Shown piece by piece: positions 13,791 through 60,713 of a stretch of 64,000 bases of DNA (position 1 is the stretch's first letter; every line of letters begins with the position of its first letter). The notes beneath the pieces were generated by a model, which worked only from the letters and a program-made list of their open reading frames with translations, was not told the DNA's origin and searched no databases. The stretch is from the IMG/VR virus record IMGVR_UViG_3300027834_000005, positions 283,233-347,232 of that record; one strand, written 5' to 3'. The translations under genes were made by a program, and so were the position numbers.

Positions 13791-14053
13791 TGTACATTAA
13801 CGATGAAGACAAAAAAGATACAGCAAACAGCACACTAGGTATATACTACATGGGCGTATTACTTATTTTATTGCTCGCAGTATGTGGGTATCAGCGCTAT
13901 ATGTTAGATGATATGGGATATGGCAATAAGGAATACTCTGAGGTTAGAGAACTATGCGTGGAAGCGCACAAGGAAGGTATCGGATGTAAAGTTGGCTTTG
14001 GCCCTTACGCCGAGTTTGAGCAAATGGAGTACACCAAGGAAGATGAGCGATAA
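13781..14053 (+). CDS. Hypothetical membrane protein
   Basis: Single TM segment (residues ~20-37). Confidence 0.5.
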   Translation: MDIMYINDEDKKDTANSTLGIYYMGVLLILLLAVCGYQRYMLDDMGYGNKEYSEVRELCVEAHKEGIGCKVGFGPYAEFEQMEYTKEDER

Positions 14054-41084: not shown

Positions 41085-43988
41085 ATGAGTAAGCCAGTAG
41101 CAGATCTAATCTTCGGTGAGGGATCAACAAATATCATTTTAAAGAAGCCATGGAGTCCATCGACTGGACTGTTTCCTACAAGTTTTTCAGAGGGATTCGT
41201 ATATATTGCAGAAGACGATGGCGTAGTAAATGCTGAAGAATTCACTGAAGGTGATTCCATAATATATAAGGATGGAGCTTGGATAAGATTTGGTTCTGCG
41301 TCAGGTGGTGGAGGTGTAGCGTTAGAGACATACACCCCAACGACTACAGACGTGTATAATCCACCATCACCTGTGACCGATGGCACTTACAATGGTAAAT
41401 CTGGAGCTAAAGTTGTTACCTATTATGGCACTGAACTAGCTTATTACCCAGCACCACCAATAAATGCTAATTTCTCAGTTACGGGCAATACTCTGTCTGT
41501 GAATAATGGTTCTAATACTGATGGCATAGCTGTATTATGTACAGACGACGCCGAGTATCCTCCGATTACAATCGACGTGCCTGTTGCCGCTTATTTCAGT
41601 ATCAATGTCCCAACTATAACTAACACCTATAACGTAGACGTTATGTTCGGCCCTAAGATGGACGGGTTTGATGGGACTGCGATTATGGGAGCATACTCAA
41701 TGGCTTCTGCTGTAATTAATGTTAGTAGTGCTGGCGGTACATTCGCTGGTAGTCCGTTTGGTGCAATAACGGATCAGGTAGGTGACATAACTACGTTTAC
41801 CGGAGTTAATAATTTTGGTGTGAAATATACACTGAGAGCAGACGAAACGATGGACGTGGAAGTGTATCAGGAAGATATGAGTACTCCGGTATTAACATTT
41901 ACTATAATCGAAACTTACTCTCATTATTACGGTGAACTAGATGAATTGGCAATACGCAAAGGTACGTACGGTATTAGCTTATTCCTTAACTCTGATAATA
42001 GTGAAACTTTTGTAGATCCTACCTTTGAGGTAGTTAATTTTATAGATGTTCCTGTGTCTGCAATAAGTGGTGCTCAAGCTCACTGGAATGGTGAAGGTAC
42101 TGTTTCTACTAATGACCCAATTCCATCTGAGAAATATTCTAAGATTCTAGAACTAGTATCTCCTCCAGCCTCTTCGGATTTCATAGATGGCGAGATAGTT
42201 ATTACCGACGAGGTTGGTGATGTTTCTACCTTATCTAGATCTATAACGGGCGTGTACACTCCACTCATAGTTAACGACGTTGCGACACCACCAGATGGTT
42301 CTTATAACGGAACTTTCTTCGAGATCGGCATGGTGGAAAATACTACCGGAATTCTTAACATTGGAAATTTTGAAGCTGTCGAGGGAGATGTGTTTGGTAT
42401 AAGTCCAGACGGAACAGTCACTCGTGGTTTTGCATCATCTGAAGTAGAAGAGCTATCATCTGTTGTTGATGGGAGAGGTTTCGGACAAGTAGTAAATGTT
42501 ACTAACTCTAATGACCTTATCACAACTAATACATCGATAGGTAACACTCATGAATTTACATACCGTAGACCAATATCTTCTATTAAAACCGACAATAAAG
42601 AAGCCTACACTACTCTGAATTACTATGGCAGAATGGAAGGTGACAACGCAACGTCAGATATAAATGACTGGGAGTTAGACAAATATTTTGATGTGTTCAA
42701 TGGTATAGATATTTTAAGCTCAGATGGATCTAATGATGCTAATGGTGTAAATAATAGTACTGGTAAGACTGTGTATAGGTGGGAAGGTAAGCCAATGCTT
42801 AATATTCCTGTTTTCAACAATACTTTCTTGAGTGAGAATACCAACGATAGTAGTGGAGTAGATCTAGTGTCTGGTTCAAGTACTGATGTTATAACCAATA
42901 AAGGGATTGTCATTGGTGATAACAACCACGTGAATTCTTATAACTTCATAAACCTACTTAATGGTGCTATCAAGGGCGAATCTGTTAATTTCCAACACAT
43001 AACAGATAATACTACTGCGTCAGATTATACAAGCTATAGTAATGTAACCACTACGACTGATGGGTCTGGGACAGGCTTGACATTAGATGTTGGTGCTTTA
43101 AATGGGCTTTATAAGATTAACTATTATCAGGACTATGGAAGTGATTATGTCGATGGGGATACTATTACAGTTTCGGCAGCGCAATTGGATGGCTCTAATG
43201 ATTTCGTTTTTAAGATATATAATACTGTGAATGGTAAACCAACGAGTAGTAATGCTGATGGTGGATATATTCCTATTCAAACAACAACTACTGCCGAGGA
43301 TGTATATCCGTACGTAGAGGCAAATTTATCAGGAGGCGGTTCTAGTGTGCAAGCTAGAATAAAAGCTTCTGGCGGTTCTTATACGATAGATCACTGGGTA
43401 AATAAAGGTACTGGTCTTTCAATTGGTAGCACGGCGACGTTCTCAGCTGGAAGTTTAGATGGTTCTAATGATTTTGTTATTGAAGTGGCGGATACTGTTG
43501 ATGCTACGGACACTAGAAGAATGACATGGGGTAAGGATAACTTCATTGGTGGTTATATAACAGTCCCAACTGGAGTTTCACTGATCATCGATTGTCAGGG
43601 ATACAATAATGAAACTACTACTAATACTTTTCAGGGTAATGGTAATGTTACCCTAAATAATGTTGGTAAAGGATCTAACATTCCGACTCCATCTTTAACG
43701 GGTATATTTACTGTAAATTATACAGAAGATGCGACTGGAGTTCCAAGTGATACTTGGGTTACTAAGTCTGGTAATTTTACTACTGATTCTGATGAAACTT
43801 ATATACTTGATAGTAGTCTCACTGTTACTGCTGGAACACACTCAGATGGCACTGTACTTAAGTTTTTAATTAAGCAAGACCCCGCGACGTTTATTATGTC
43901 ATTTAGTGGTTTTGGCGTAACTATAAACCCAGCGTATCGTGACTACATAACACTGACTAAGGTCAATGGACTTTGGTATAAGTCATAA
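41085..43988 (+). CDS. Large fibre/appendage protein A
   Basis: 967 aa, Thr/Ser/Gly-rich; N-terminal 70 aa paralogous to 44846..47971; GSGTGLTLDV...YGSDY..GDTITV repeats. Confidence 0.65.
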   Translation: MSKPVADLIFGEGSTNIILKKPWSPSTGLFPTSFSEGFVYIAEDDGVVNAEEFTEGDSIIYKDGAWIRFGSASGGGGVALETYTPTTTDVYNPPSPVTDGTYNGKSGAKVVTYYGTELAYYPAPPINANFSVTGNTLSVNNGSNTDGIAVLCTDDAEYPPITIDVPVAAYFSINVPTITNTYNVDVMFGPKMDGFDGTAIMGAYSMASAVINVSSAGGTFAGSPFGAITDQVGDITTFTGVNNFGVKYTLRADETMDVEVYQEDMSTPVLTFTIIETYSHYYGELDELAIRKGTYGISLFLNSDNSETFVDPTFEVVNFIDVPVSAISGAQAHWNGEGTVSTNDPIPSEKYSKILELVSPPASSDFIDGEIVITDEVGDVSTLSRSITGVYTPLIVNDVATPPDGSYNGTFFEIGMVENTTGILNIGNFEAVEGDVFGISPDGTVTRGFASSEVEELSSVVDGRGFGQVVNVTNSNDLITTNTSIGNTHEFTYRRPISSIKTDNKEAYTTLNYYGRMEGDNATSDINDWELDKYFDVFNGIDILSSDGSNDANGVNNSTGKTVYRWEGKPMLNIPVFNNTFLSENTNDSSGVDLVSGSSTDVITNKGIVIGDNNHVNSYNFINLLNGAIKGESVNFQHITDNTTASDYTSYSNVTTTTDGSGTGLTLDVGALNGLYKINYYQDYGSDYVDGDTITVSAAQLDGSNDFVFKIYNTVNGKPTSSNADGGYIPIQTTTTAEDVYPYVEANLSGGGSSVQARIKASGGSYTIDHWVNKGTGLSIGSTATFSAGSLDGSNDFVIEVADTVDATDTRRMTWGKDNFIGGYITVPTGVSLIIDCQGYNNETTTNTFQGNGNVTLNNVGKGSNIPTPSLTGIFTVNYTEDATGVPSDTWVTKSGNFTTDSDETYILDSSLTVTAGTHSDGTVLKFLIKQDPATFIMSFSGFGVTINPAYRDYITLTKVNGLWYKS

Positions 43989-44785
43989 TGAAGTTAGCTA
44001 TAATGAATAGGTTTGGTATGGGAGTTGTTATCTTGAATACACAAGATAACAGCTTGAAAAAAACCAAGCATTCTTTTCCTCAAGATGGTATTGGTGGCGG
44101 AATGATGAAAGACGGAATTCTGCATTGGTGCTCCAACAGGGGAATCAATACGGAGGACGGTATAAAACATAAAGCTAGGTTTGGCTCCCCTCATTCACTT
44201 ATAGAGCATGGCGGTGATTTCGTGGTATCAAATACGACTGAAAATAACGTCATGAATCATAAAGGTGAAGAAATATACTATCCTACGTTCTTAGAACGCG
44301 ACTGCACAAAAGACTATATACATCTTAATGATTGCATCAGTGTCGATGGCAGATTGATGTTATCTTCTCTTAGTAAGCGCACTTATTGGAGAGATAACTT
44401 CACTGACGGTGGACTGTGGTATGGCGATGACGTTAATAATGGCGCTACTGTGTATATCCCCCATACTCCATGTGAGTATGAAGGGAGAATTTACGTGTTA
44501 GAGACAGGAAGTGGTTCGCTGTTGTCGTTCAATAAAAATCTTGGCGATAAGAAGATTGAACTTATCAATTTCAAGGGCTTCCTACGAGGCTTAATAATGA
44601 AAGATGGGCATGCTTACATAGCGTCCTCCGCTTTCGATCCAAATAGAAGCTTTGCTAAAATACATAACTGCCATAGGCTGAAAAGTAGTTATGGTAGAAT
44701 ATATAAGGTAAACATGTCTAACGGACATAGAGAAATTATATACGAATCCGAAGGTGCGGACATATCCTCTATATGTGAAGCTTAA
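43988..44785 (+). CDS. DUF4915 / TIGR03032-like beta-propeller protein
   Basis: PTF...DYIHLN...DG...LS...WR...DGG...PHTP..YEG.IY.LETGSG.L...GFLRGL matches the family pattern. Confidence 0.75.
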   Translation: MKLAIMNRFGMGVVILNTQDNSLKKTKHSFPQDGIGGGMMKDGILHWCSNRGINTEDGIKHKARFGSPHSLIEHGGDFVVSNTTENNVMNHKGEEIYYPTFLERDCTKDYIHLNDCISVDGRLMLSSLSKRTYWRDNFTDGGLWYGDDVNNGATVYIPHTPCEYEGRIYVLETGSGSLLSFNKNLGDKKIELINFKGFLRGLIMKDGHAYIASSAFDPNRSFAKIHNCHRLKSSYGRIYKVNMSNGHREIIYESEGADISSICEA

Positions 44786-44845: not shown

Positions 44846-47800
44846 ATGACATCCATTAACGACATATATTACGGTCAAAATACGACCAATGTTATTTTCA
44901 AGAAAACATGGAGTCCTTCCACAGGTTTATACCCAACTGACATGACAGAAGGTATCATGTACATTGCTGAAGATGACGGCACTGTTGGCGTTGAGAACTA
45001 CGTAACAGATGACGCTATTTTTTATAAGGACACATCATGGATAAGGCTTGGTTCTGCTGATAGCGGATCTCCGGTTGCTGTGTCCGATACTCCCCCTCCT
45101 GCCCCAGAAGAAGGTGACTTGTGGTGGGATTCTTCTGTGGATAACAGTGGTCCGTTATACACGTGGAATGGCACGGAATGGGCAACGTCTAGCGGCGGCA
45201 CATCTATAGAAAACTGGACACCTGTGCCTATTAGTGTGCCTATCATAGGTACTATTGATGTTAGTGGAAACACCACTATCACGCCTAATGCTACAGGAGC
45301 AACATTCACTAATACTGCGAACGGAGGCTTTCCAGCCACATCGTTCTCAGTAGATGACGTATTCGAGATGAGTACTGTTGAGACTGGCATGTATTTCAAA
45401 TTATCTAATATGTATGATGCCAGTAGTGGTGGCGGCGGATATAACGGATTCACAGACAGTACGGCTGATTGGTATACTATGGGTGGAGCCTTATGTGGTT
45501 TATATCTTGACGCAACTGGTACTGGAGACTTCGATGGTAATTTACAGATTTCAGTTGGTAGTTACTTGGAAGGGACATCAGAAGGTGATGCGCTAAACGT
45601 GACAATTCCTTTTGCAAGCATACAAGATAAAGAATTATGTATATCCGTTTACCATGATAACGTAGACACCATCACTGTTAATTTATATAGCGAGGATACT
45701 GTTAACGTTCCAATTCATACATTTTCATACACGTTGGTGAGTCTGTCATTGCAGGACGCGGTAGATTCTATTACAAGGTCATTTAGTACTGTGTATCAAG
45801 ATACTAATACTTTTTCACCTACAGCAATAGGAACGCATTATACAGTTCCTACAGTGGTGCATTCCAATGTAACTTTGTTCTCAGATGTAAAAGTTGATCC
45901 TACATCATATCCTGTAGTTACTGAAAATACTCAATTTAGAGTTAATGCATTGGCAGCTCCGTTATACGCAGAAGATATAGACGTGACATTAAAAAATGGT
46001 TACTTAACATCATTTAGTGCGGCTGGGGCATTGGAAACTGCATCTCCTGAACTTACTGCGAACGAGATTAATGCTCAGTTGGCTACATTTGCGTCAACTA
46101 CCGGAAATAATACTTTTACTGGAGACAACACGTTCAGTGGCGAATTTGTAGATAGCAAGCACTTAGAAAGTAATGGAACAGATACGTTCGATCTAGACAA
46201 TCACACTAAATATTTATTTAAGATTAGGAGTAACTCAACAGCAGCAACAGTTAATTTGCCAGATATTAGTCCTTCTAATAACCAACTTCTTCCTTATGTA
46301 GAAATAACGGCAGTCGGTAAATTAGGACAAGTGACAATAGATGATCCTTTAGTGTCTGAGAACTTCTTCATTAACGGTGTTGATTCTGGTGCAAGTACAT
46401 ATGTGATTACGTCCGGCGCGAAAGTGTTACTGGTTAAAGGACCTACTTCGATTAGTAGTGATAGATGGCATGTTATTGACATGGCTGCCGTTGGTAGTGG
46501 CGGTATGTCAACTGTCATTTTAAATAGTGATGACGGTAGTGTGACTAATGCTGATGTGGGTACGAAGTACGTACAGATACAATCAACAGTAGGTGCGTTG
46601 CCATCTACCTTTATTTTACCTAACACTGCTGATAATGGTGAGCAAATAATACTTGAGGTAAGTGATAACTATGAAACTCGCATTCAATGTGCTAGCACAG
46701 ACATTAAGATTTTCGGTATAGATTCAGATACTACTATTCCAGCTGGGCTTGGAAGTACATTCAAAACAGAAAACCAAGCAATATATACGTTCACGTATAA
46801 TGTTGCGAAGTCTTGGTGGGAGTGTATTATATCTGGTGGTGTTCTTGATTTTATCGGTAAGTTCGGAACAAACGTTGATCTTGATTTGGCAGGCGGAAAC
46901 GTAGTAATTTCTAGTGGTCAGCCTACGGGTGAACTTAGTCTTAGTGTACAAACATCGGCGATGAACATGTCATCACCATCCGACTTAGCAATAGCTACTA
47001 AGAAATATGTTGATGATAATGCCGTTGGTGGTTTTGATAACACATCCCTTGCATCGTATAGTGCAGCCGGAGATATTGTTCTTAATGCTAATACAGCTAT
47101 TGGTGACCAGATAACATTAAATGCTACTAACTTTGGTGGCGAAGTAAATATAAATTCTTACTCCGCATTAGATGTGAATGTATCTAACGGTTTAATAAAT
47201 TTCACAAGTGAAGATATGTTACTGGGGTTAACCCCGTCATCAAGCAATGCTTCTAAAATATTCTTTAAAAACGATGGCATCGATTTAGGTAATTACGGTT
47301 ATGTATCGGCAGCGGGAGATAGTACGTCCGCCGGTATTAGACTTTCTAGTAACACAGAACAGAGCTTCATGGATATCAGAGGTGATAGAATTGTAATGGA
47401 TTCTGATAGTGACGTGGTTATTGTTAGCGGTGGCGGATCAGGTCAAGGTAAGTTGAGTTTCTTAGATTTACTAAACAGCCAAGCTGGATTTGTAGGTGCA
47501 TATTCGTCTTCTGCTGGCGGCATTCAGATTAGCTCTAATAACTCGGCACATTCATTAAACATAACTAATAGCGGCGGTGTATCTGTTAGTGCTGATCCCG
47601 TAAACCCACTTAACGTTGCAACTAAACAGTACGTAGACCATGGTAATATGAAAGCTGTAACTGTGACTTTTGCGTCAACAGACACAACTGTGAATGTTGG
47701 GACAGCTGTGCCTAGTAACGCTTTAGTCGTGTCTTGCAAGATAAACATAACTACCGCATTTGATGACGTAGCAGCAACATTGACAGTTGGTAATTCAACG

Positions 47801-47971
47801 ACTAATGATGGCATATCAGCGACTGTTAGTAGTGACCCATCCACATTAGGCTTATACGCAAATGATTCTTTATTTGACGTATTAGGAAATGGACAAATAC
47901 AAATATTCGTAAGTGCCGGTACTGCTACTGTTGGAGCAGGAAGAGTTCTAGTAGAATACTACATCCCATAA
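44846..47971 (+). CDS. Large fibre/appendage protein B
   Basis: 1041 aa; N-terminus paralogous to protein A; P..P.EGDLWWDS unit; ATKxYVD motifs. Confidence 0.65.
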   Translation: MTSINDIYYGQNTTNVIFKKTWSPSTGLYPTDMTEGIMYIAEDDGTVGVENYVTDDAIFYKDTSWIRLGSADSGSPVAVSDTPPPAPEEGDLWWDSSVDNSGPLYTWNGTEWATSSGGTSIENWTPVPISVPIIGTIDVSGNTTITPNATGATFTNTANGGFPATSFSVDDVFEMSTVETGMYFKLSNMYDASSGGGGYNGFTDSTADWYTMGGALCGLYLDATGTGDFDGNLQISVGSYLEGTSEGDALNVTIPFASIQDKELCISVYHDNVDTITVNLYSEDTVNVPIHTFSYTLVSLSLQDAVDSITRSFSTVYQDTNTFSPTAIGTHYTVPTVVHSNVTLFSDVKVDPTSYPVVTENTQFRVNALAAPLYAEDIDVTLKNGYLTSFSAAGALETASPELTANEINAQLATFASTTGNNTFTGDNTFSGEFVDSKHLESNGTDTFDLDNHTKYLFKIRSNSTAATVNLPDISPSNNQLLPYVEITAVGKLGQVTIDDPLVSENFFINGVDSGASTYVITSGAKVLLVKGPTSISSDRWHVIDMAAVGSGGMSTVILNSDDGSVTNADVGTKYVQIQSTVGALPSTFILPNTADNGEQIILEVSDNYETRIQCASTDIKIFGIDSDTTIPAGLGSTFKTENQAIYTFTYNVAKSWWECIISGGVLDFIGKFGTNVDLDLAGGNVVISSGQPTGELSLSVQTSAMNMSSPSDLAIATKKYVDDNAVGGFDNTSLASYSAAGDIVLNANTAIGDQITLNATNFGGEVNINSYSALDVNVSNGLINFTSEDMLLGLTPSSSNASKIFFKNDGIDLGNYGYVSAAGDSTSAGIRLSSNTEQSFMDIRGDRIVMDSDSDVVIVSGGGSGQGKLSFLDLLNSQAGFVGAYSSSAGGIQISSNNSAHSLNITNSGGVSVSADPVNPLNVATKQYVDHGNMKAVTVTFASTDTTVNVGTAVPSNALVVSCKINITTAFDDVAATLTVGNSTTNDGISATVSSDPSTLGLYANDSLFDVLGNGQIQIFVSAGTATVGAGRVLVEYYIP

Positions 47972-47982: not shown

Positions 47983-49491
47983 ATGACAAAGAGATATGAT
48001 TTAAGCGGAATTGGCAGTTCCATGGAATTAGGTAAAAATGGTCCACTGATAACAGATAATAATGGCTCAGTGGAGATTGATGGTAATAAATTATTGGGGG
48101 AATCCGAATCTTCCCCTGTGTTTAGTTCGGGCACATTAGGGGCGATTTCATTAACTGTTAATGTGGACCCAACCAAATTCGATGTGTCAATCGACAATGC
48201 GGTATTTGTAGACCACACGTATGGCAGTGCAACGCCACTTACCTATACTGGTGCACAATCTTTTACTGCGGTGACGTCTCCGCTTATTGGTTCAGAAAAT
48301 TCTACTTTTGTAGGTATAAATTCATCAGGCACATTAGTCTATAAAAATGTACAATATACTCCCGTAGAAAGAAGAACTATTGTATATATTGGTGTGCTGG
48401 TACACACTGATAATGTGAATATATCATCGGCAATAACAACACCAACGCAAGCGCAAGATAACGATCAGCTGCTTATAGACTTAGTGGATGTGATAGGTGC
48501 AGTAAATGTGTCTGGGAATAGTTTTGAACCAGTAGATACTTCGCTAGCATTAAAAAAGACCGCAGGATCATCTTTTGGGAGATCGGTAGGATATGAATCC
48601 ACACCGTCCAGCCCGAATATAGATGCATCTCCTGAAATATCCCCTCTGACATTCTTCTCTAACTATAGGGATGCCACCACTGGGGTGACTATTGGTGTGG
48701 AAAATGTTGTCGATCCTAATTTCTGGGATGATGGAACCGGCACGCTAAATGCTTTAGCTAATAACCGAGTTGTAGCACATAGAATTACTTATTTCGCTTC
48801 TGATGATAGTGTCGTTATTCAATATGGGCAAAATGAATATTTAGATATGTCAGCAGCTGAATCTGGATACATATCTGAAGTATTTGAAGAGAGGAATAAT
48901 CTAAGTGCGGGTATATTCAGAGGGTGGTTATTGCTTACTGAAGGCATTACCAATTTAACAGCCGCATTCGGTAGTGGGGCTGCAAAGTTTATAGAATCGA
49001 ATAAATTTGGCGGTAGCGCTTCTGCTGGTGACCATTTTGATCCGTCATTGTCGCAATCTATAACTGGCGCATGGGACTTTACGCAAGAAATTCTTTTGGC
49101 AGCAGATCCTACTTCAGTACTAGGTGTGGCCACTAAGCAATATGTAGATGCTAACGTGGGTACTGGTTTGGAGAATGTGACAGTGTCCCCAACTACATCA
49201 GGAGTCATATCCTATACTGGCTCCACATCAGGAACTCATATAATAAATTTAACTGGTGATGGAACTTTAACTATGGATGATGCGCCAATAACCATACAGC
49301 CTAATGTTACTACGCTTTCTTTCTTTGTGAAACCCGCCGCCCACGTATTAGGGTTTAGTGGTAACATTGACTGGGGTGATGCTGGCCTTCCAGATTTAAC
49401 AGCTAATAAGTTGACGTCATTCACCTTGATATCTTTCGGTAATTCTGCGTCATGGTTAGGAACTGCCGGTAACAGCGGGTATGTAGCGTAA
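47983..49491 (+). CDS. Virion structural/appendage protein
   Basis: 502 aa; ADPTSVLGVATKQYVD motif shared with the fibre genes. Confidence 0.6.
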   Translation: MTKRYDLSGIGSSMELGKNGPLITDNNGSVEIDGNKLLGESESSPVFSSGTLGAISLTVNVDPTKFDVSIDNAVFVDHTYGSATPLTYTGAQSFTAVTSPLIGSENSTFVGINSSGTLVYKNVQYTPVERRTIVYIGVLVHTDNVNISSAITTPTQAQDNDQLLIDLVDVIGAVNVSGNSFEPVDTSLALKKTAGSSFGRSVGYESTPSSPNIDASPEISPLTFFSNYRDATTGVTIGVENVVDPNFWDDGTGTLNALANNRVVAHRITYFASDDSVVIQYGQNEYLDMSAAESGYISEVFEERNNLSAGIFRGWLLLTEGITNLTAAFGSGAAKFIESNKFGGSASAGDHFDPSLSQSITGAWDFTQEILLAADPTSVLGVATKQYVDANVGTGLENVTVSPTTSGVISYTGSTSGTHIINLTGDGTLTMDDAPITIQPNVTTLSFFVKPAAHVLGFSGNIDWGDAGLPDLTANKLTSFTLISFGNSASWLGTAGNSGYVA

Positions 49492-52400
49492 TGATCATAC
49501 CAACTAACCTCAGAAAAATTGACAAAGTACCTAAATACCCAGTTGGGTGGTCACTGTCTCGTAATTCTACAGCACTGACCATGCAGTACACAGAAGTGCA
49601 AGCTGAAGAGCCTGTTTATGAGAGAATAATACAATCGCCAATGGCCTTTCAAGATATTCAACCTTACTCAAGTGGATTAACCGACGCTACTATACAACCG
49701 ACATATGCATCGGTTGTGGCTGATATAGAGGCGCTTGATGCAACATATACTAATGTAGTCGTTGATGATATTTCAACTATCACTGGTGCTACTGTGTTGC
49801 CTAGCGGACGTAAAATGTTAACTGTTCGGATAAATGATGATGGTGTAAAACCTATCATCTGTTTACACACTTGCACACATGGAGGAGAGAATCACTCCTT
49901 CACTGGGGTGTTAAGTTTTATTGATCATTACTTAACATCTAATGATGCACTTAGTGTGTGGTTGAGAGAAACTGTGTCACTAGTATGGTTAGCAATACCG
50001 AATCCAGACGGATTATTCAGTGATAATAGACGTAATGATAATAACATAAACCTTAACAGGAATTACCCTTATTTCTGGGATTACGCGGCTGACCCTGATA
50101 AAGGTGCTGCTCCCCTTGACCAAAACGAAACAGCTAATATGATAAACTTCCTAACAGTGGAGATGATGGGGCGAATAATTTCATTCCTTGATATCCATGG
50201 ATGGTTCTCTAGGTCAACTTATGGGTTCCTGACAGATCAGATATGGGAAGGTGATATAAGAGCTTTGAAACAACAACGTGCTGCATACCTATACATGAAA
50301 TCTATCATGGATAAAAGAGACTGGGCTTCTGAATTCACCATTGTCAACGCACTTCCTACACCAGTGGAAAGACGTTCATCACGTAAACCCTACATATCTT
50401 ATGCGATACGAAAACATTGCAAGTCAACCGCATGGACAGGCCAATTCGAATACTCTCACCAAGAGAATGTTGGTGTAGGCGGAACTGCTGTGCTTGATGC
50501 TATCACAGGCGTGTGTATGGCTGCTCGTGATGGGCTTGTTTCAGAGAGCATCGGCGTTGTTAGTACGGGATTATTTGCGCCTACAGATATCGTCAATAAT
50601 AATTCTCACTTTGACGACGCATGGAATGTTTCTGAGAATAGACCGCCTTGGTTTAAGTATGAATCTCTAAGTGTTCAGAATAATACATTGGTCAATCCTC
50701 ATTATACAGAAACTCAGGTAGTTATTAATAGGCCTCTTTCATCAAGCTGGCCTATTCTTTTCACCAATGCTGGTGAGACAGTTAATGCAGATCCCCTGTT
50801 GGAAACAGGTGGTCATGTTTATATTGTTGGTGGGGAAGTTTCTTCTGGAACTTACACGAATGATTTCTATCGTGAGCAGCTTGTCCAACCAGAACCACCG
50901 CAGATTGGCGATAACAACTATGGGATTTATTTACCTGAAATAGAGCAAGAACAATTACCGAATTTACCCTACTCAGCTAAAGGTGTTAAATTAGCAAATG
51001 ATGGAACGTATATCTATGCATTTGGTGGATTTGATGGGACCTACCACGCCGAAATCTATCGTATTGCTATTGCTGGCGTAGACACAAATAGTTGGACTCT
51101 AGTTCACACTATGACTTCATATGGTGGTGAAGGTTTAAATCGACACAGTATGGATTTCTGGAATGGTAATCTTGTGATCACTGGTGGCAGAACATCTATT
51201 GGTTATGAAGATAAAACAATTTTGGTTGATGTGTCCACGTGGTCTGAGACTATTATTGTAAGATCATCAAATGATATTGATCCATTCTTTTCTGCGCGTG
51301 GCTGGCATAGCACCGTGTTAGTGGGTGATCTTTTATATGTTATTGGTGGTTGGACAGGAACAACAACGCTATTAAGCGTATATGAAATAAACCTAGTGAC
51401 ACGTGGAAGGTTTTACCGTCCATTGCCTTCTGCGAGAAGACAAGCTTCTGCGGCATATTCTGCAGACACTGATAAGATTTATGTTATTGGTGGTTGTTCT
51501 GGTTCTACAACCACGCCAACATATCTTGATGCTTTAGAATTTGATAGAGCGACGGATACTTGGTCTGATTATGTACATTCACTTGATACATTCGTAGATG
51601 AGGACGGTGATACGGTTACGATTGATCCAATGTTAAGATTGAATCCAATCATGTATTACAACCCGTTGTCTTATCAGTTAATATTCGCTGGTGGTGAAAG
51701 TGCAGTGGACGTTTCTACCGCAACAGTGTATGAGATTTTACTATCATCAAGTCTTGTGTCTTTACGTGAAACTAATGATGCGAACTACGGTTTGATTAGG
51801 CCAAATTCTATATTTCCGTCAGTTGAAGGTGAAGTGTATGTATTAAACATTGCAGCCGAAAGGTTAGATGCTATTGACCCTCAAGTGAACGCCTATTTGA
51901 GACCTTGTATCTACTCTGGTAACTGGGCAACTCCTATACGTAAGAACAGGCTAGGATATAGTGTGCCTCCTAATAAAGGCGTCCATATATATTCTATTCC
52001 TGTACAAGCGCATGCAGGATTTGATCCTGAGATACGTGGGTTCTTACGTCATTACGGAAGTGGCACGCGTGTTGTGTTAGGCGCAATGCAAATTACAAAA
52101 GGGCAACTACACGGGACACTTATTCCCGAAACAGGTAAGGCGTCAGACGTAGTGACTGTGTCTTTTGATAATATGGTAGATACGAATAACGAAGCATATG
52201 GTGTTATGTCACCTATGTGGGGTAGTCAGCAGGCTACTAATGGAGACTTAACTGCCATAGACTTTACTGTGGATGGAGCTAATGATCTTGATCTTCTATC
52301 CCTCACATATTCTGCTACTGCGGATGGCGTTTATACAGATCCAAACTCATATATTGATTTTTCCCCTAATGGAAACTTCACGTTGCGCTGGACTGAGAAT

Positions 52401-52628
52401 GCAACCCCTCACACTCACGTATTTACTACGGTAGAGTTAAACCATGACAGGTATGCACCGGCATGGAGAAAAGATGTATTTCATTGGAGGCTAAGATATT
52501 CGGGGGCTGATTTAGTTTTCGATTTGTGGTTTTATAATGAGATGCAGACTGTAAATCTTGGAGCAATAACTAGTGATATAACAGGATTTACGATAGACGG
52601 CGCAAATGCCGTATGTAAAGTTCAATAA
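49491..52628 (+). CDS. M14 zinc carboxypeptidase - Kelch propeller fusion protein
   Basis: THGGE (HxxE), NPDG, RRN..NINLNRNYP, LDIHG, FEY; six Kelch blades (YIVGG, YAFGG, VITGG, YVIGG, YVIGG, IFAGG). Confidence 0.85.
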   Translation: MIIPTNLRKIDKVPKYPVGWSLSRNSTALTMQYTEVQAEEPVYERIIQSPMAFQDIQPYSSGLTDATIQPTYASVVADIEALDATYTNVVVDDISTITGATVLPSGRKMLTVRINDDGVKPIICLHTCTHGGENHSFTGVLSFIDHYLTSNDALSVWLRETVSLVWLAIPNPDGLFSDNRRNDNNINLNRNYPYFWDYAADPDKGAAPLDQNETANMINFLTVEMMGRIISFLDIHGWFSRSTYGFLTDQIWEGDIRALKQQRAAYLYMKSIMDKRDWASEFTIVNALPTPVERRSSRKPYISYAIRKHCKSTAWTGQFEYSHQENVGVGGTAVLDAITGVCMAARDGLVSESIGVVSTGLFAPTDIVNNNSHFDDAWNVSENRPPWFKYESLSVQNNTLVNPHYTETQVVINRPLSSSWPILFTNAGETVNADPLLETGGHVYIVGGEVSSGTYTNDFYREQLVQPEPPQIGDNNYGIYLPEIEQEQLPNLPYSAKGVKLANDGTYIYAFGGFDGTYHAEIYRIAIAGVDTNSWTLVHTMTSYGGEGLNRHSMDFWNGNLVITGGRTSIGYEDKTILVDVSTWSETIIVRSSNDIDPFFSARGWHSTVLVGDLLYVIGGWTGTTTLLSVYEINLVTRGRFYRPLPSARRQASAAYSADTDKIYVIGGCSGSTTTPTYLDALEFDRATDTWSDYVHSLDTFVDEDGDTVTIDPMLRLNPIMYYNPLSYQLIFAGGESAVDVSTATVYEILLSSSLVSLRETNDANYGLIRPNSIFPSVEGEVYVLNIAAERLDAIDPQVNAYLRPCIYSGNWATPIRKNRLGYSVPPNKGVHIYSIPVQAHAGFDPEIRGFLRHYGSGTRVVLGAMQITKGQLHGTLIPETGKASDVVTVSFDNMVDTNNEAYGVMSPMWGSQQATNGDLTAIDFTVDGANDLDLLSLTYSATADGVYTDPNSYIDFSPNGNFTLRWTENATPHTHVFTTVELNHDRYAPAWRKDVFHWRLRYSGADLVFDLWFYNEMQTVNLGAITSDITGFTIDGANAVCKVQ

Positions 52629-52646: not shown

Positions 52647-52901
52647 ATGGATAAGGCAAAATTGTTAGAAATGTTATTTGATATTGGTTCTAGGCTAGTA
52701 GACACTAACGCAGTTGTTGGTAAAACAAACTTAAGTACTGTATCAGGTGGTACATTACTTGCGGCTGGTTCTACTTTACTATATACTGGTGAGCCAATCT
52801 CACAAGTAGCTGGTGCCGTAGCGTGCGTAGTTGGACTATGTCTGATGAAGTACCGTGATAGCAAAGCTAAAGATGAAAAAAAGGAAGATGAGTCGAAATA
52901 A
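52647..52901 (+). CDS. Small hydrophobic membrane protein (holin-like topology possible)
   Basis: SD AAGGAG; two hydrophobic segments and a charged C-terminus. Confidence 0.5.
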   Translation: MDKAKLLEMLFDIGSRLVDTNAVVGKTNLSTVSGGTLLAAGSTLLYTGEPISQVAGAVACVVGLCLMKYRDSKAKDEKKEDESK

Positions 52902-52902
52902 A

Positions 52903-52931
52903 TTGACTTAACCTCAAATGTCCCCTATAAT
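52903..52931 (+). promoter_or_regulatory. sigma70 promoter
   Basis: TTGACT-17 bp-TATAAT. Confidence 0.7.
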
Positions 52932-52955
52932 CATTCTGAATTTAGGGGACACCTC

Positions 52956-53354
52956 ATGCCAAAGACAGAAACAGAAAAACAACAAACCTACTTAAAAAAT
53001 ATGGTCCTTAGTCTTATAGGTGCTATCATATCTGCCGTGTGCCTTGCATTCATCCTAGGACGTAACGACGGTCTCCGTAACGCAAAACTAGACGTAGACA
53101 CAGAGAAAGCAAAATATATCATTCTAGCCGGAGAATACCAATCTCTTAAAGATGAGAATGCATTGTACTATAATGCTATTCGTAGATGGGATGCATCTAC
53201 CGACGAAAACTTCGTTATGAGTGTTGACTACCTTAATACCCTTGATAAGAAGTTCGAATCCTCTTCTGTAATAAAAAAGAAAACAACTATTGAAAACATG
53301 TCTAAAGTGTGTGAAGATATTACCTCACTTAAAAAACAAGGCATGCTTAAATGA
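52956..53354 (+). CDS. Membrane-anchored hypothetical protein
   Basis: TM at residues ~17-34 then helical region. Confidence 0.55.
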   Translation: MPKTETEKQQTYLKNMVLSLIGAIISAVCLAFILGRNDGLRNAKLDVDTEKAKYIILAGEYQSLKDENALYYNAIRRWDASTDENFVMSVDYLNTLDKKFESSSVIKKKTTIENMSKVCEDITSLKKQGMLK

Positions 53355-54139
53355 ATCCATATACCGTACTAGGCGTAAGAAGCAATGCCAGCGAAAAAGA
53401 AATAAAGAAAGCTTATAAGAAGCTTAGATCCGAGAACCACCCTGATAAGATGATCGCTAAAGGTGCGTCTGATTCGGAAGTGAAAAAAGCTACGGACAAG
53501 TCTCAAAGCATTCAAGAAGCTTACGATAAAATTAAGAACGGTGAATACGTTGAAAGTTCTTTTGAATTTAAGCCAAAGACAAAATGGCATGAATCTAGCA
53601 GCAAGTATTCAGGCAGACATGGCTATCAGCAGTATTATAATGATCGTAATGAAAGTCCGAAAACTTATACATTAGAAACCACAGTAGAACAATTATACGA
53701 TGGTTTTACAATTGACGCTACTTCTTCAGGTCTATGTGAATTCAATGTACCTAAAGGTGCGAACCACGGAACACACATGTTCGTGATGAATAAAAGAATT
53801 AAAATAAATGTTGTGAATGACCCAAAATCTAGATATACTGTTCACCGTAATACAGTGTATACAGGTGCTAAAATATCAACGATTGATGCAACATTGGGAA
53901 CCGAGATTACATTCGAACACTTAAACGGAAAATCGTATAAAGTGAAGGTTCCTAAAGGTACTGTAGATAAGAAAGAAATTGTTATGCCTGAGCTAGGTCT
54001 GTACAATAGAGACACTGGTAAGCGTGATAATTTAATCTTTATCGTTTACGTAGAAACTATTTCAATATTTGATAAAGAAACAATTGACATGCTTACGAAG
54101 AAGGGTTACTATAAACACTCTTACAGCATTGGCAAGTAA
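53351..54139 (+). CDS. J-domain co-chaperone (J domain plus DnaJ/CbpA-type C-terminal domain, no zinc finger)
   Basis: NPYTVLGV...EIKKAYKKL...HPDK; C-terminal IDATLGTEI...L.G..YKVKVPKGT...GL...G...GL. Confidence 0.88.
   Translation: MNPYTVLGVRSNASEKEIKKAYKKLRSENHPDKMIAKGASDSEVKKATDKSQSIQEAYDKIKNGEYVESSFEFKPKTKWHESSSKYSGRHGYQQYYNDRNESPKTYTLETTVEQLYDGFTIDATSSGLCEFNVPKGANHGTHMFVMNKRIKINVVNDPKSRYTVHRNTVYTGAKISTIDATLGTEITFEHLNGKSYKVKVPKGTVDKKEIVMPELGLYNRDTGKRDNLIFIVYVETISIFDKETIDMLTKKGYYKHSYSIGK
54084..54112 (+). promoter_or_regulatory. sigma70 promoter inside the J-protein 3' end, upstream of clpA
   Basis: TTGACA-17 bp-TACTAT. Confidence 0.6.
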
Positions 54140-54165: not shown

Positions 54166-56388
54166 ATGTCTAAACGTGATATCGAAAACATTGTAACAAC
54201 AGCAGTTGAATTGGCACGCTCTAACAAGCACGAATATTTAACAGTAGAGCATTTACTTTGGGCGGTTCTGGACGACAAGGGCGTAGTGCAAGTTATTACT
54301 GATATTGGTGGCAAGCCTACCCGTATCAAGGGTGATTTGGACAAGCACTTAGCCAGTGACTTATCCAACTTATTGCCATCACATGAACATGGTGACGACC
54401 CGAAGAAAACATCTTCTGTTGACCGTATCATGCGTCGTTCTTTAGCGCAGCATATGTTCTCTAACAGCCAAGACATCACAGGCTTGAACGTGTTGGTTTC
54501 CATCATGAGCGAAGATCGTTCACAGGCAGTAGCCATTTTAACAGCGCACAAAGTTACTAAAGACGCGGTGTTGGCGAAATTGAAAGGTAAAAGCAAGAAA
54601 AAACCAGGTGAAGAAACAGATCTTGAAAAATACTGTAAAAACCTTAACGAGCAAGCCGAAGAAGGTAAAATCGATCCGGTTATTGGTCGTGAAACTGAAA
54701 TCAAAGATATGGTCGAAATGATCGCACGTCGCAAGAAAAGCAACGTAATCTTCACGGGTCAACCAGGTGTTGGTAAGACTGCGATTGTTGAAGGCTTTGC
54801 CAAAGAAATCTCTGAAGGTAACGTGCCTGAAGCATTGGAAGACAAAATAGTTTTGTCTCTTGATATCGGCGCGTTAATGGCTGGTACTAAGTATCGCGGC
54901 GAATTTGAAGAGCGTATGAAAAACGTTCTGGATGAAATCGAAGAGAAAGGTAACGTTGTTCTTTTCATCGATGAAATCCACATGATCATGGGTGCCGGTG
55001 CGGGTTCTGGTGGTTCAGTTGACGCAAGTAATTTATTGAAGCCTGCGTTGGCAAGCGGTCGTATGATTTGTGTTGGTGCTACTACTGATGATGAGTACGC
55101 AACTCACTTCGAAAAAGATCGTGCCTTAATGCGTCGTTTCCAACGTTTGGATGTGCAAGCGCCAAGCGTAGAAGATTCCAAGCGTATCTTGGAAGGTGTT
55201 AAGAAGTACTACGAAGAGTTCCATGGCGTAACTTACGATGCCGATACACTGAACATGTGTGTTGACTTGTCTGAGCGTTATGTTAAGACTCGCTTACTTC
55301 CTGATAAAGCCCTTGATATCATGGATTCGGCTGGTGCAAAAGCGAAGTTGGATAAATTGCCTACGGTAACAATCGATATGGTTCTTGAACGCACAGCCAA
55401 GATGGCGAAAATGCCTCTTGACATGTTAGACCTGAAAGAAAATGAATCATTGTTAAATCTTGATAGCCGTGTAAAAGACATCGTCTTCGGCCAAGATGAA
55501 GCGATTGATCTAATGGTTGAATCCATTGCTCTTTCTAAGTCCGGTCTTCGTGAAACGAATAAGCCTATTGGTTCATTCCTGTTCGTTGGTCCGACTGGTA
55601 CTGGTAAGACTCACGTTTGTAAGACTCTTGCTGAGCAAATGGGTGTATCTCTGGTTAAATTCGACATGTCAGAGTACATGGAGAAACACAGTGTGGCTCG
55701 TTTGATTGGTGCACCTCCAGGTTATGCTGGTCATGGTGAAGGTGAAGCAGGTTCAGGCCAGCTTATCTCACAAGTTGAGAAAAACCCTAACTGCGTGTTG
55801 TTGTTGGATGAGATCGAAAAAGCTGATCCAGCGGTGTTAACTGTATTGTTACAGGTGATGGAAGACGGCGTACTTACTGGCGGTACTGGTAAGAAAGTTG
55901 ACTTCTCTAACTGTATCATCATCTTCACCAGTAACTTGGGTGCGGCTGCGGCAGAGAAGCGTTCAATCGGTTTCGGTAACGATGCGAATGAAGGTAAGAT
56001 CAAAGAAGCAGTTAAGAAGCACTTAACTCCTGAGTTCCGTAACCGTATCGACCATATGGTTGAATTCAAGCCTCTTGGCGAAGAAGAAATGGGTTACATC
56101 GTTGTTAAGTCTATCGATGACTTGAACAAAATGGTTGAAGCAAAAGACATTACTGTCAGCGTATCATTAGCTGCTCGTGAATGGCTTGCTACAAACGGCT
56201 ATGACAGAACAATGGGTGCTCGTCCTTACAAGCGCTTATTTGAGAACTTAGTTAAAAAGCCATTAAGTAAGAAAATCATCGGTGGTGAGCTTATCGACGG
56301 CGGAAAAGTGTCCGTGGGCGTGAAAGACGATGAGCTGACTATCAGCGTCACCAAAGCCAAGGTTGTGACTCCTGCCGCCGAGGCATAA
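54166..56388 (+). CDS. clpA: ATP-dependent Clp protease ATPase subunit ClpA
   Basis: N-domain HEYLTVEHLL, NBD1 GQPGVGKT/KYRGEFE/FIDEIH, NBD2 GPTGTGKT/LLDEIEK, IGF loop, no middle domain. Confidence 0.95.
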   Translation: MSKRDIENIVTTAVELARSNKHEYLTVEHLLWAVLDDKGVVQVITDIGGKPTRIKGDLDKHLASDLSNLLPSHEHGDDPKKTSSVDRIMRRSLAQHMFSNSQDITGLNVLVSIMSEDRSQAVAILTAHKVTKDAVLAKLKGKSKKKPGEETDLEKYCKNLNEQAEEGKIDPVIGRETEIKDMVEMIARRKKSNVIFTGQPGVGKTAIVEGFAKEISEGNVPEALEDKIVLSLDIGALMAGTKYRGEFEERMKNVLDEIEEKGNVVLFIDEIHMIMGAGAGSGGSVDASNLLKPALASGRMICVGATTDDEYATHFEKDRALMRRFQRLDVQAPSVEDSKRILEGVKKYYEEFHGVTYDADTLNMCVDLSERYVKTRLLPDKALDIMDSAGAKAKLDKLPTVTIDMVLERTAKMAKMPLDMLDLKENESLLNLDSRVKDIVFGQDEAIDLMVESIALSKSGLRETNKPIGSFLFVGPTGTGKTHVCKTLAEQMGVSLVKFDMSEYMEKHSVARLIGAPPGYAGHGEGEAGSGQLISQVEKNPNCVLLLDEIEKADPAVLTVLLQVMEDGVLTGGTGKKVDFSNCIIIFTSNLGAAAAEKRSIGFGNDANEGKIKEAVKKHLTPEFRNRIDHMVEFKPLGEEEMGYIVVKSIDDLNKMVEAKDITVSVSLAAREWLATNGYDRTMGARPYKRLFENLVKKPLSKKIIGGELIDGGKVSVGVKDDELTISVTKAKVVTPAAEA

Positions 56389-59900: not shown

Positions 59901-60713
59901 AACATTACTGGTCTTTCTACTATGGCTTCGTCTGGTAACATATATGACGCGGTTGACTTCAATGAAAATACCATCGTTGTGGGCGGAGATAACTTCTTGA
60001 CTTGGTCAGGGACAGAATGGGAATGTGTGGAGGCTATAGGCGGAGACACAGGGCCTCAAGGTATTCAGGGTATCCAAGGTATTCAGGGTAATGATGGTCC
60101 TCAAGGTCCTCAAGGCATCCAAGGTATTCAGGGTAATGATGGTGCTACAGGAGCTACTGGTCCTCAAGGTATCCAAGGTCAAGCTGGGCCAGGTATTACA
60201 TATAAAGGTACTATTGCCTCAATCGCTGGATTACCAGCGGCTGGTAACGTAGGTGACATGTATGTTCTTATAGCTGATGATTTACCTGCTACTGCCGGTG
60301 ACAGATTCGTAGATAATGGTGTTACGTTTGATAATACTGGTGCCGGTCAAGCTGGTGCAACTGGTGCCGATGGTGCTGACGGTGTTGATGGTGCTACAGG
60401 CGCTACTGGTCCTCAAGGTATCCAAGGTATCCAAGGTATACAAGGTGATGCTGGTGCCCAAGGTAATACTGGTGCTACAGGCGCAACAGGACCTGCTGGT
60501 GCAACTGGTGCTAAAGGTAATACTGGTAACACTGGTCCTACAGGACCTCAAGGTTCTAAAGGTAATACTGGTGACACGGGTCCCACGGGTCCTACTGGAG
60601 CTAATGGTACTAACGGTACTAATGGTGCCCAGATTATCCATCACGGATCAGAGTCGGCTGCAATATCTGCTTCTGCAGGCGACACATTCAATCTACATGT
60701 ATGGACGGTGTAA
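56922..60713 (+). CDS. Long repeat-rich fibre protein with C-terminal collagen-like domain
   Basis: L.DLTDV...VL.WDG.EW repeats, VAT.G.Y.DL.N.P repeats, five HxH motifs, Gly-X-Y tracts from about 60046 to 60620. Confidence 0.85.
60046..60620 (+). repeat. Collagen-like Gly-X-Y repeat (two tracts split by a short globular insert)
   Basis: [10 protein letters not shown] / GATGATG repeats; DNA repeats of GGTATCCAA/GGTATTCAG. Confidence 0.9.

Follow-up and report, generated by a model that had tools for sequence, protein, structure and literature searches.

The open reading frame at positions 49,491 to 52,628 raises the question of why a marine phage would join a zinc carboxypeptidase to a Kelch propeller in the last gene of its tail module, and what such a protein would do for the virus. 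The window analyzed here is a stretch of 64,000 nucleotides that forms the end of a 347-kb marine virus record (IMGVR_UViG_3300027834_000005), which is distantly related to the phiCbK-like giant siphoviruses. A sequence-only reading of this DNA had noted a complete M14 motif set, a linker domain, six Kelch repeats and a C-terminal beta domain in a gene translationally coupled to a structural gene. It had proposed a virion-borne enzyme that cuts a peptide barrier (peptidoglycan stem, polyglutamate capsule or S-layer) with the Kelch domain as the binder, in an architecture not recognized from characterized phages. The positions of the features discussed below are collected in the following table.

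Features of the M14-Kelch locus and its immediate surroundings (positions within the 64,000-nucleotide window)
Position	Strand	Feature	Residues or length
47983-49491	+	Upstream tail-fibre-like protein, proposed adaptor or shaft carrying the M14-Kelch protein	502 aa
49138-49488	+	Conserved C-terminal module of the upstream protein (alignment A5), proposed docking module	about 110 aa
49489-49493		TAATG, one-base overlap of the upstream stop with the next ATG	
49491-52628	+	M14-Kelch-lectin tail protein (P0001)	1045 aa
49491-49670	+	N-terminal arm	aa 1-60
49671-50543	+	M14A-like zinc carboxypeptidase domain	aa 61-351
50544-50738	+	Linker domain	aa 352-416
50739-51770	+	Six-bladed Kelch beta-propeller	aa 417-760
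51771-52106	+	CBM-like beta-sandwich	aa 761-872
52143-52625	+	Galectin/LamG/ConA-like jelly roll, probably the distal specificity domain	aa 885-1045
52647-52901	+	ORF with strong RBS, membership of the system uncertain	84 aa
52920-52950		8-bp hairpin closing the gene string

We first asked whether the architecture is real, and the observation made from the sequence is confirmed. The reading frame has no internal stops, and each of the motifs that had been named is present, at H130-G-G-E133, N171-P-D-G174, R180, N189-R190-N191, L233-D-I-H236 and F319-E320-Y321. Scans against family profiles matched Pfam Peptidase_M14 (E 3e-12, aa 105-238) and Kelch families (E 6e-19 to 2e-14, aa 439-694), all above the curated cut-offs, as well as PHROG 4722, annotated as zinc carboxypeptidase (E 6e-14). 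An AF2 model of the protein is confident (pLDDT 86.8, pTM 0.81), and when it was aligned to known structures (VIA) residues 61-351 gave a complete M14 fold (Z 25-27, rmsd 2.5 A over about 260 residues to carboxypeptidases B, A and T), whereas the propeller scored Z 34, with Foldseek TM values of 0.80-0.85 to six-bladed KLHL12 and the designed six-blade SAKe proteins and a PDB profile match at E 1e-41. In the model the first 14 residues of the N-terminal arm are disordered and the rest forms short strands; this is the least conserved part of the family, at 20% mean identity, and other clades carry fused tail domains at this end. The linker domain is mostly beta (pLDDT 60-90) and has no family match.

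The C-terminal beta domain is also real and resolves into two beta-sandwiches. The first (domain model pLDDT 86) aligns at Z 8-9, a modest score, to the sugar-binding C-terminal domain of EclA and to CBM4-2. The second aligns at Z 10-11 to galectins, the PilC pilus-tip lectin module and the adenovirus fibre galectin domain, and Foldseek likewise returned galectins; in AFDB its best hit is a protein named "Tail fiber protein" (E 2.6e-8), followed by LamG proteins at TM 0.52-0.55. These two domains are the fastest-diverging folded parts of the protein, the last being the most divergent of all. Translational coupling to the upstream gene, which matches tail-fibre PHROGs 5668 and 16641 (E 1e-10, aa 48-349), is inferred from the one-base overlap of stop and start.

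When the peptidase domain is compared across 28 homologues at 24-60% identity, the pattern of conservation is far beyond chance. The zinc ligands H130, E133 and H236, the predicted catalytic E320, and the substrate anchors R180 and N189 are invariant, and the further anchors R190 and Y301 are each kept in 26 of 28 sequences; two family members have Asp in place of R190. The M14 domain is the most conserved domain of the protein. A profile of the N-terminal region is closest to the M14A carboxypeptidases A, B and T (E 7e-23 to 1e-14, the best being carboxypeptidase A), with which it shares the HxxE, Arg, Asn-Arg, His, Tyr and Glu motif set, against 4e-9 for MpaA. The anchor for the C-terminal carboxylate, equivalent to N144/R145/Y248 of carboxypeptidase A, is retained as N189/R190/Y301, and predicts an exopeptidase that removes C-terminal residues rather than an endo-acting depolymerase, although the assignment of Y301 and E320 to Tyr248 and Glu270 of carboxypeptidase A rests on secondary-structure register and conservation and not on a residue-level superposition. 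In contrast to the M14A enzymes there is no recognizable pro-segment, the sequence beyond the third zinc ligand is too divergent to align by HMM, and the presumed S1' region (aa 305-312) is variable, with Arg or Lys at position 307 in 16 of 28 sequences; the phage protein also differs in its fusion to a Kelch propeller and two lectin-like domains and in being encoded in phage tail modules.

We investigated the genomic context of the gene and its relatives. The family is small, with about 40 clusters among 1.84 billion representatives. In the window the gene is the last of a + strand string (29.8-52.6 kb) that holds virion structural proteins, a homologue of the phiCbK-group tail protein, and tail-spike- and fibre-like genes. 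The homologue P0002 (60% identity) is the last tail gene of a siphovirus-type prophage, where it follows a tape measure (670 aa) and then 254-, 601-, 75-, 156- and 133-aa genes and sits just before the holin. The homologue P0003 (51% identity) directly follows, and overlaps, a 218-aa protein with the T7 tail-fibre N-terminal adaptor domain PF03906 and precedes the T7-type small terminase, which places it in the gp17 slot of a T7-like podovirus. P0004 (35% identity) carries a fused Phage_tail_2 domain, a tail-tube-like domain, and the 1810-1865-aa forms carry Phage-tail_3 (E 1e-33) and Rcc01698_C (E 8e-26) after the M14-Kelch unit, which is inserted into a GTA/lambda-J-type tip protein; they follow a tape-measure-sized gene and 205-, 278-, 135- and 200-aa genes typical of GTA or lambda-like tips. 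Homologues thus sit in the tail-fibre or host-specificity slot of four different tail types, or are fused to tail domains. In two contexts the gene borders lysis genes, with a holin downstream in one locus (L003) and an endolysin two genes upstream in another (L016), so that position alone is ambiguous in those loci.

The upstream gene provides a second line of evidence. The A5 module at its C-terminus is 43-54% identical (E 1e-25 to 7e-40) to the C-termini of the genes directly upstream of P0002 (133 aa) and P0003 (218 aa), so that in the closest clade it travels with the M14-Kelch gene on three different N-terminal parts, and it was found nowhere else in our searches. A second type of upstream module (A6) matches the C-termini of tail-fibre PHROGs in the 975-aa clade, again with overlapping stop and start, and an overlap with an upstream fibre-type gene is conserved in at least five contexts. 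A complex prediction of the A5 module with residues 1-880 showed no interface, which is not evidence either way.

Taken together, we suggest, with a probability of roughly 0.55, that the gene encodes a tail-distal, enzyme-bearing host-recognition protein of a marine jumbo siphovirus. The analysis itself establishes the five-domain architecture (counting the two C-terminal sandwiches together), the strong conservation of the catalytic and substrate-anchoring residue set, the recurrence of the family in the tail-fibre or host-specificity position of unrelated tail types, and its movement in the closest clade as a two-gene cassette with the A5 module. What follows is inference. Virion attachment is well supported by this comparative evidence, though not by direct detection, and would be mediated by the A5 module. 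The lectin-like domains and/or the Kelch face would bind a host surface glycan, and the carboxypeptidase, which looks catalytically competent from its sequence, would then remove C-terminal amino acids with a free alpha-carboxylate from an as yet unidentified structure on the outer surface of a Gram-negative host, candidates being a peptide- or amino-acid-decorated capsule, O-antigen or exopolymer, or a surface protein or appendage. In this view it would act as a receptor-modifying or receptor-destroying enzyme and not as an endo-depolymerase. An outer-surface role is consistent with the T7-like context, since a lateral fibre of such a phage cannot reach the murein, with the three candidate carbohydrate-binding domains, and with the hosts, which are Pseudoalteromonas, Magnetococcales and Noviherbaspirillum. 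Set against this reading, the predicted fold is a compact multidomain globule and not the trimeric beta-helix or fibre typical of tailspikes.

The interpretation offered by the sequence-only reading is thus supported in part. A virion-borne location, an apparently intact peptidase and an uncharacterized architecture all hold up, whereas the lead to MpaA-like gamma-D-Glu-mDAP peptidases is not supported by the profile comparison and the cutting of a barrier is weakened by the exopeptidase anchor. A polyglutamate capsule is likewise weakened as the substrate, because all identifiable hosts are Gram-negative Pseudomonadota and no PghP-like match appeared among the listed sequence or structure hits. 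The Kelch domain as the binder remains a hypothesis, for which the two C-terminal lectin-like domains are at least as good candidates.

Of the alternatives, a virion-associated peptidoglycan hydrolase that trims or cleaves murein stem peptides in the periplasm during tail penetration, for example as an LD- or DD-carboxypeptidase or a gamma-D-Glu-mDAP peptidase, is the least unlikely. The M14 family contains murein peptidases and the family profile does detect MpaA, the phage T5 tape-measure protein carries a zinc-carboxypeptidase motif linked to wall perforation (bioRxiv 10.1101/2022.09.20.507954; PMC11445458), and in the GTA-like fusions the module is part of the central tip protein. However, the profile is 14 orders of magnitude closer to carboxypeptidases A, B and T than to MpaA, the T7-like relative occupies a slot outside the outer membrane, the lectin and propeller domains are typical of surface binding, the GTA-like loci keep their usual small tip-protein gene series alongside the fusion, and a published review states that carboxypeptidases are rarely produced by phages (PMC6116005). 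It is more doubtful still that the protein is a soluble late enzyme, released at lysis to degrade a peptide-containing matrix around cells and so free progeny or expose new hosts, as the phage PghP hydrolase does for poly-gamma-glutamate. The neighboring lysis genes in L003 and L016, the compact globular model and a possible membrane protein directly downstream in the window are compatible with this, but the covalent fusions to tail-tube-like and tip domains, the fusion of the partner module to the T7 tail-fibre virion-anchor domain and the conserved stop/start overlap all argue against it.

We regard two further readings as similarly improbable. The M14 domain may work on the phage's own proteins, either trimming the C-terminus of the upstream fibre or adaptor during assembly or holding the adaptor's C-terminal tail in its active-site cleft as the docking contact. 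The adaptor module and the M14-Kelch gene are always adjacent and overlapping, and the adaptor C-termini are conserved and end in aromatic, aliphatic and small residues (GYVA, GFAV, GFAG), which is reminiscent of the C-terminal tails by which small protein inhibitors plug M14A active sites; yet the fused forms, which lack this adaptor, keep every catalytic residue, and the A6-type adaptors end differently. Alternatively, the domain may be a catalytically silent scaffold in what is purely an adhesin, as enzyme folds are often recruited as binding modules in receptor-binding proteins and the activity proposed here is predicted from sequence and structure alone, but near-complete conservation of the zinc ligands, catalytic Glu and carboxylate anchors down to 24% identity, in the most conserved part of the protein, is the pattern expected for a working active site.

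We found no characterized example of this architecture. The only cultured carrier is Pseudoalteromonas phage J2-1, whose protein ATN93378 is listed as a "Kelch motif family protein" and is the only relative found in the collection of deposited phage genomes. It has the same full-length architecture, with 28% identity over 83% of the query and all catalytic residues kept, but its gene lies just upstream of the terminase with no A5-type adaptor; no paper describes the protein, and the two papers that mention the phage do not discuss it. The proposed logic is, by analogy, that of enzymatically active, adaptor-mounted tail fibres and spikes, such as the O-antigen deacetylase gp63.1 of phage G7C, mounted on an adaptor fibre, or the SP6/K1-5-type adaptor plus tailspike, in which a surface-modifying enzyme with lectin-like domains is docked on a separate adaptor that carries the virion-anchor domain, and here too the module is exchangeable between phages. 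G7C gp63.1 appears weakly (E 5e-4) among the Foldseek hits of the C-terminal unit. The predicted chemistry differs, being that of a zinc peptidase instead of a glycosidase, lyase or esterase, there is no beta-helix, and trimer formation and docking would be by analogy only.

Virion-associated peptidoglycan peptidases, such as the T5 pb2 zinc-carboxypeptidase motif and the M23 and NlpC/P60 tail lysins, would share the property of a virion-borne metallopeptidase, but sit in tape-measure or tip proteins that enter the periplasm, whereas this protein sits in fibre slots, carries lectin-like domains and is M14A-like. PghP is a phage zinc hydrolase with a carboxypeptidase-like fold, but a small soluble enzyme of Bacillus phages. 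Kelch proteins have been found in jumbo-phage virions by mass spectrometry (CBB_552; PMC5259590), which speaks for the host-recognition reading, and six-bladed Kelch propellers also occur in proteins of phiKZ-like phages; those proteins lack a peptidase domain, and the M14-Kelch family is not restricted to jumbo phages. Directly downstream of the gene in the window, the 84-aa ORF has no family match and no homology to the ORFs downstream of other family members, and encodes two hydrophobic segments and a charged C-tail.

The uninterrupted 1045-aa ORF contains every motif that the sequence-only reading had listed (H130-G-G-E133, N171-P-D-G174, R180, N189-R190-N191, L233-D-I-H236 and F319-E320-Y321), and the observation of an M14 zinc peptidase joined to a Kelch propeller therefore holds. 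Pfam reports Peptidase_M14 (PF00246; E 3e-12; 47.1 bits against a cut-off of 21.6 bits) and several Kelch families (E 6e-19 to 2e-14), all above the curated cut-offs, and PHROGs reports 'zinc carboxypeptidase', whereas NCBIfam gave only a sub-threshold mutarotase-type Kelch hit. The 502-aa gene directly upstream matches tail-fibre PHROGs, and its stop overlaps the ATG by one base (TAATG).

To examine the anatomy of the protein (P0001), we built an AlphaFold2 model on a 28-sequence family alignment, which is confident (pLDDT 86.8, pTM 0.81). When this model was aligned exhaustively (VIA) against 48,161 PDB chains, two domains were clearly placed: a complete M14 alpha/beta fold (Z 25-27, rmsd 2.5 A over about 260 residues to carboxypeptidases B, A and T) and a Kelch propeller (Z 34). 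The latter is a true Kelch propeller of six four-stranded blades, with a PDB profile match at E 1e-41 and Foldseek TM scores of 0.80-0.85 to six-bladed KLHL12 and the designed six-blade SAKe proteins. The last 285 residues, which have no sequence match in the PDB, were folded separately (pLDDT 86.3) and are predicted to form two beta-sandwiches, one CBM-like (Z 8-9) and the other a galectin/LamG/ConA-like jelly roll (Z 10-11 to galectins, a pilus-tip lectin module and an adenovirus fibre galectin domain). In AlphaFold DB the best match of this two-domain unit is a protein named 'Tail fiber protein' (E 2.6e-8), followed by LamG proteins at TM 0.52-0.55. As these scores are modest, we call the domains lectin-like and do not claim membership of any lectin family. 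An ESM Atlas shape search found only Kelch clusters, and no large cluster holds the whole architecture.

A profile of the N-terminal 420 residues is closest to M14A carboxypeptidases in the PDB, with insect CPA at E 7e-23, CPA2 and CPB at about 1e-19 to 1e-18 and CPT at 1e-14, compared with 4e-9 and 1.6e-6 for MpaA and about 1e-7 for bacterial and human cytosolic carboxypeptidases. The domain is thus not closer to the MpaA/M14C gamma-D-Glu-mDAP murein peptidases than to other M14 subfamilies, and on the profile and structural comparisons the MpaA-like and PghP-like readings are rejected as the closest relatives. Across 28 homologues at 24-60% identity, the zinc ligands H130 and E133 (aligned to the HxxE of CPA) and H236 (aligned to the 'DIHS' His of CPA, His196), R180, N189 and E320 are invariant. 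E320 lies at the end of strand 315-322, before the C-terminal helix 327-349, as does the catalytic Glu270 in CPA, although this residue-level equivalence is inferred and does not rest on superposed coordinates. The anchor for the C-terminal carboxylate of the substrate (CPA Arg127, Asn144, Arg145 and Tyr248) is likewise retained: R190 is kept in 26 of 28 sequences, as is Y301, which is replaced by Phe in the other two and whose equivalence is also inferred. The M14 domain is the best-conserved part of the protein, at 33% mean identity among distant members, compared with 23% for the C-terminal jelly roll and 20% for the N-terminal arm. All sequence and fold criteria examined for M14 are satisfied, and this is the pattern of a working active site, with the retained Asn-Arg-Tyr anchor predicting an exopeptidase that needs a free C-terminal carboxylate. 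The presumed S1' region (aa 305-312) varies between members, with Arg or Lys at 307 in 16 of 28; this mapping is an inference that does not rest on superposed coordinates, and a single-sequence PDB search with the N-terminal domain of a distant member found nothing from which the pocket could be aligned residue by residue.

The window forms the last 64 kb of a 347,232-bp IMG/VR virus record, estimated to be 94% complete and derived from a marine metagenome. The family-B DNA polymerase ORF that runs off the end of the window also runs off the end of the record, which therefore ends inside a gene and is either incomplete or cut at an arbitrary point of a circularly permuted genome. A tail protein of the same gene string is about 36% identical to 'putative tail protein' of the giant siphoviruses of Caulobacter and Brevundimonas, Dolichocephalovirinae. 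The M14-Kelch gene is single-copy in the genome and closes a string of structural and fibre-like genes, beyond which lie an 84-aa possible membrane protein, a hairpin and then a separate set with DnaJ- and ClpB-like genes. No RNA run holds the sequence, and the only DNA run that does is one marine metagenome, probably the source sample. A megablast of 14 kb around the gene against deposited phage genomes found no match.

Coordinates of the M14-Kelch protein, its domains and other features of the window and of related loci
Locus	Position	Strand	Feature
Window	49491-52628	+	M14-Kelch gene, 1045 aa (P0001)
P0001	aa 61-351		M14 domain
P0001	aa 417-760		Kelch propeller
P0001	aa 761-872		CBM-like beta-sandwich (predicted)
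P0001	aa 885-1045		Galectin/LamG/ConA-like jelly roll (predicted)
Window	29.8-52.6 kb	+	String of structural and fibre-like genes
Window	31149-32879		Tail protein of the same gene string
Window	36311-37768 and 43988-44785		DUF285 (Mycoplasma-type repeat) protein and DUF4915 protein
Window	41085-43988, 44846-47971		Large ORFs
Window	52647-52901		84-aa ORF, possible membrane protein
Window	52920-52950		Hairpin
Window	53351-54139 and 54166-56388		DnaJ-like gene and ClpB/Hsp104-type gene
Window	56922-60713		1263-aa protein with collagen triple-helix repeats
Window	61961-64000		Family-B DNA polymerase ORF
L006 and L007 (loci with the P0004 gene)	5223-5800 (L006) and 4746-5323 (L007)		HicA/HicB toxin-antitoxin pair
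L033 (Magnetococcales genome)	6759-12812		Apparently split GTA/lambda-J-type tip protein
L003 (prophage carrying P0002)	13217-14551		Lysis cassette

The main new evidence comes from the relatives of the protein and their genomic contexts. The family is small: about 40 clusters score E<1e-30 among 1.84 billion representative proteins, twelve full-length loci are in IMG/VR, and one cultured phage carries it, Pseudoalteromonas phage J2-1, in which the protein, ATN93378, is annotated 'Kelch motif family protein' and whose host, P. phenolica, is cultured. A scan of the genome collection with a 5-sequence alignment showed that two bacterial genomes carry it, Magnetococcales and Noviherbaspirillum. 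The relative P0002 (60% identity) is the last tail gene of a siphovirus-type prophage, following the capsid, connectors, tube, tape measure and 254-, 601-, 75-, 156- and 133-aa genes and lying just before the holin. The relative P0003 (51%), in a T7-like podovirus, overlaps the end of a 218-aa gene carrying the T7 tail-fibre N-terminal adaptor domain and precedes the small terminase, which is the gp17 slot. The relative P0004 (35%) has a fused Phage_tail_2 (tail-tube-like) domain, and forms of 1810-1865 aa (about 34%) carry Phage-tail_3 and Rcc01698_C after the M14-Kelch unit and close a GTA/lambda-like tip gene series. The gene thus occupies the fibre or host-specificity position of the tail module in the window and in four other tail types, and one unit attached in several different ways to different tail types is the signature of an exchangeable receptor-binding module.

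In the Magnetococcales genome the tip protein of GTA/lambda-J type appears split, in that a 206-aa ORF matches the first 200 residues of a 1309-aa tail-protein PHROG (E 8e-70) and the next ORF (1810 aa) carries the M14-Kelch unit; by analogy with the 1863-aa protein of locus L011, which has Phage-tail_3 and Rcc01698_C C-terminal domains, the unit looks like an insertion into that protein. Immediately downstream of the tail-tube-fused P0004 gene lies the HicA/HicB pair, and in the prophage that carries P0002 the lysis cassette right after the gene consists of a holin (PF16083), a 182-aa membrane-like protein and a 149-aa protein that, by eye, resembles M15-type L-alanyl-D-glutamate peptidase endolysins. 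The ORFs downstream of the gene in different loci are not related to one another.

The last ~110 residues of the gene directly upstream (module A5) are conserved among the window (502 aa), the prophage (133 aa) and the T7-like phage (218 aa), with identities of 43-54% and E 1e-25 to 7e-40, whereas the N-terminal parts differ completely, being a fibre shaft, a ~30-aa stub and the T7 virion anchor, respectively. A scan of IMG/VR, a word search of 5.8 billion proteins and a profile HMM run over all ORFs of 38 loci found this module only in the loci already identified. In the ~975-aa clade a second type of upstream module (A6) occupies the same place and matches the C-termini of tail-fibre PHROGs; aligning the A5 and A6 profiles with hhalign gave a collinear alignment over 90 columns, but at E 0.097 and a probability below 1%, and homology is not claimed. 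Stop/start overlaps between the adaptor gene and the M14-Kelch gene recur in at least five contexts. We infer that this module docks the protein on the tail, although a complex prediction of A5 with aa 1-880 scored 0.00, a value that we do not weigh in either direction.

We therefore suggest, with a probability of roughly 0.55, that the protein is a tail-distal, adaptor-mounted recognition protein whose lectin-like domains and/or Kelch face would bind a surface glycan, and whose carboxypeptidase would remove C-terminal residues from something exposed on the outer surface of a Gram-negative host. What the analysis establishes is the M14 and Kelch membership, the conservation of the active-site residues and the recurrent tail-module position, whereas presence in particles, docking on the adaptor, binding to the host, zinc-dependent carboxypeptidase activity and the outer-surface target are inferred. 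The interpretation given in the sequence-only reading is partly supported: its proposals of a virion-borne and enzymatically competent protein are upheld at this inferred level, but those of an MpaA-like, polyglutamate-directed or barrier-cutting enzyme are not supported. The model has no beta-helix and the protein is not a classical tailspike depolymerase, in which a trimeric right-handed beta-helix acts on polysaccharide, as its catalytic domain is an M14 alpha/beta fold; rather, it would work like an enzymatic receptor-binding protein mounted on an adaptor, but with a chemistry not described for that role.

Among the alternatives, a peptidoglycan-directed virion lysin is the least improbable, though it remains unlikely, as the lateral-fibre slot in the T7-like phage, the M14A rather than MpaA affinity and the three candidate sugar-binding domains all favour an outer-surface target over murein. 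A soluble enzyme released at lysis is more doubtful, and action on, or docking to, the C-terminus of the phage's own adaptor and an inert scaffold appear slightly less likely still.

A more speculative and, on present evidence, unlikely possibility is that this is the first member of a new enzymatic class of phage receptor-binding proteins, a tail-mounted exopeptidase or de-aminoacylase. Acidic polysaccharides of marine Gammaproteobacteria can be decorated with amino acids, the wider M14/AstE-AspA group includes N-acyl-amino-acid hydrolases, and one family member hits AstE_AspA_cat at E 8.5e-7. In this view the enzyme, guided by its Kelch and lectin domains, would strip amide-linked amino acids or short peptides that carry a free carboxylate from the capsule, O-antigen or exopolymer of marine Gram-negative bacteria, editing the receptor rather than depolymerising it, and would spread between sipho-, podo-, myo- and GTA-type tails as a plug-in cassette with its own docking module.

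No paper on an M14-Kelch tail protein was found in the literature searches. A review notes that carboxypeptidases are rarely produced by phages (PMC6116005), a zinc-carboxypeptidase motif is known in the T5 tape measure, and Kelch proteins have been found in jumbo-phage virions (PMC5259590). The known enzymatic tail fibres and spikes are glycosidases, lyases and esterases, and the virion peptidases described so far attack peptidoglycan from inside the tail tip. A carboxypeptidase in the fibre slot would add a new chemistry to how phages read and edit the bacterial surface, and would point to peptide or amino-acid decorations of marine bacterial envelopes as phage receptors, a question that the cultured carrier J2-1 makes directly testable. 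The family also gives an unusually clear example of modular exchange, as one enzyme-lectin unit appears to be attached in at least four ways (two types of separate adaptor, fusion to a tail-tube-like domain and insertion into a GTA/lambda-J-type tip protein), making it a useful case for understanding, and for engineering, how receptor-binding modules are plugged onto different tails.

The surroundings of the gene in the window hold further features. The 84-aa ORF has a strong RBS, two hydrophobic segments and a charged C-terminal tail and looks holin-like, but has no family match and no relative downstream of other family members; the hairpin that follows it is a perfect one of 8 bp. The DnaJ-like gene (J domain plus DnaJ_C) and the full-length double-AAA+ gene of ClpB/Hsp104 type (PHROG 4871, E 6e-251) lie directly after the tail module and look like a phage-encoded chaperone pair, which separates the main tail module from the collagen-repeat protein with its many tail-fibre PHROG matches. 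Within the tail or fibre gene string, the DUF285 and DUF4915 proteins were matched at E 1e-39 and 3e-15, respectively, and several neighbouring large ORFs have no informative family match.
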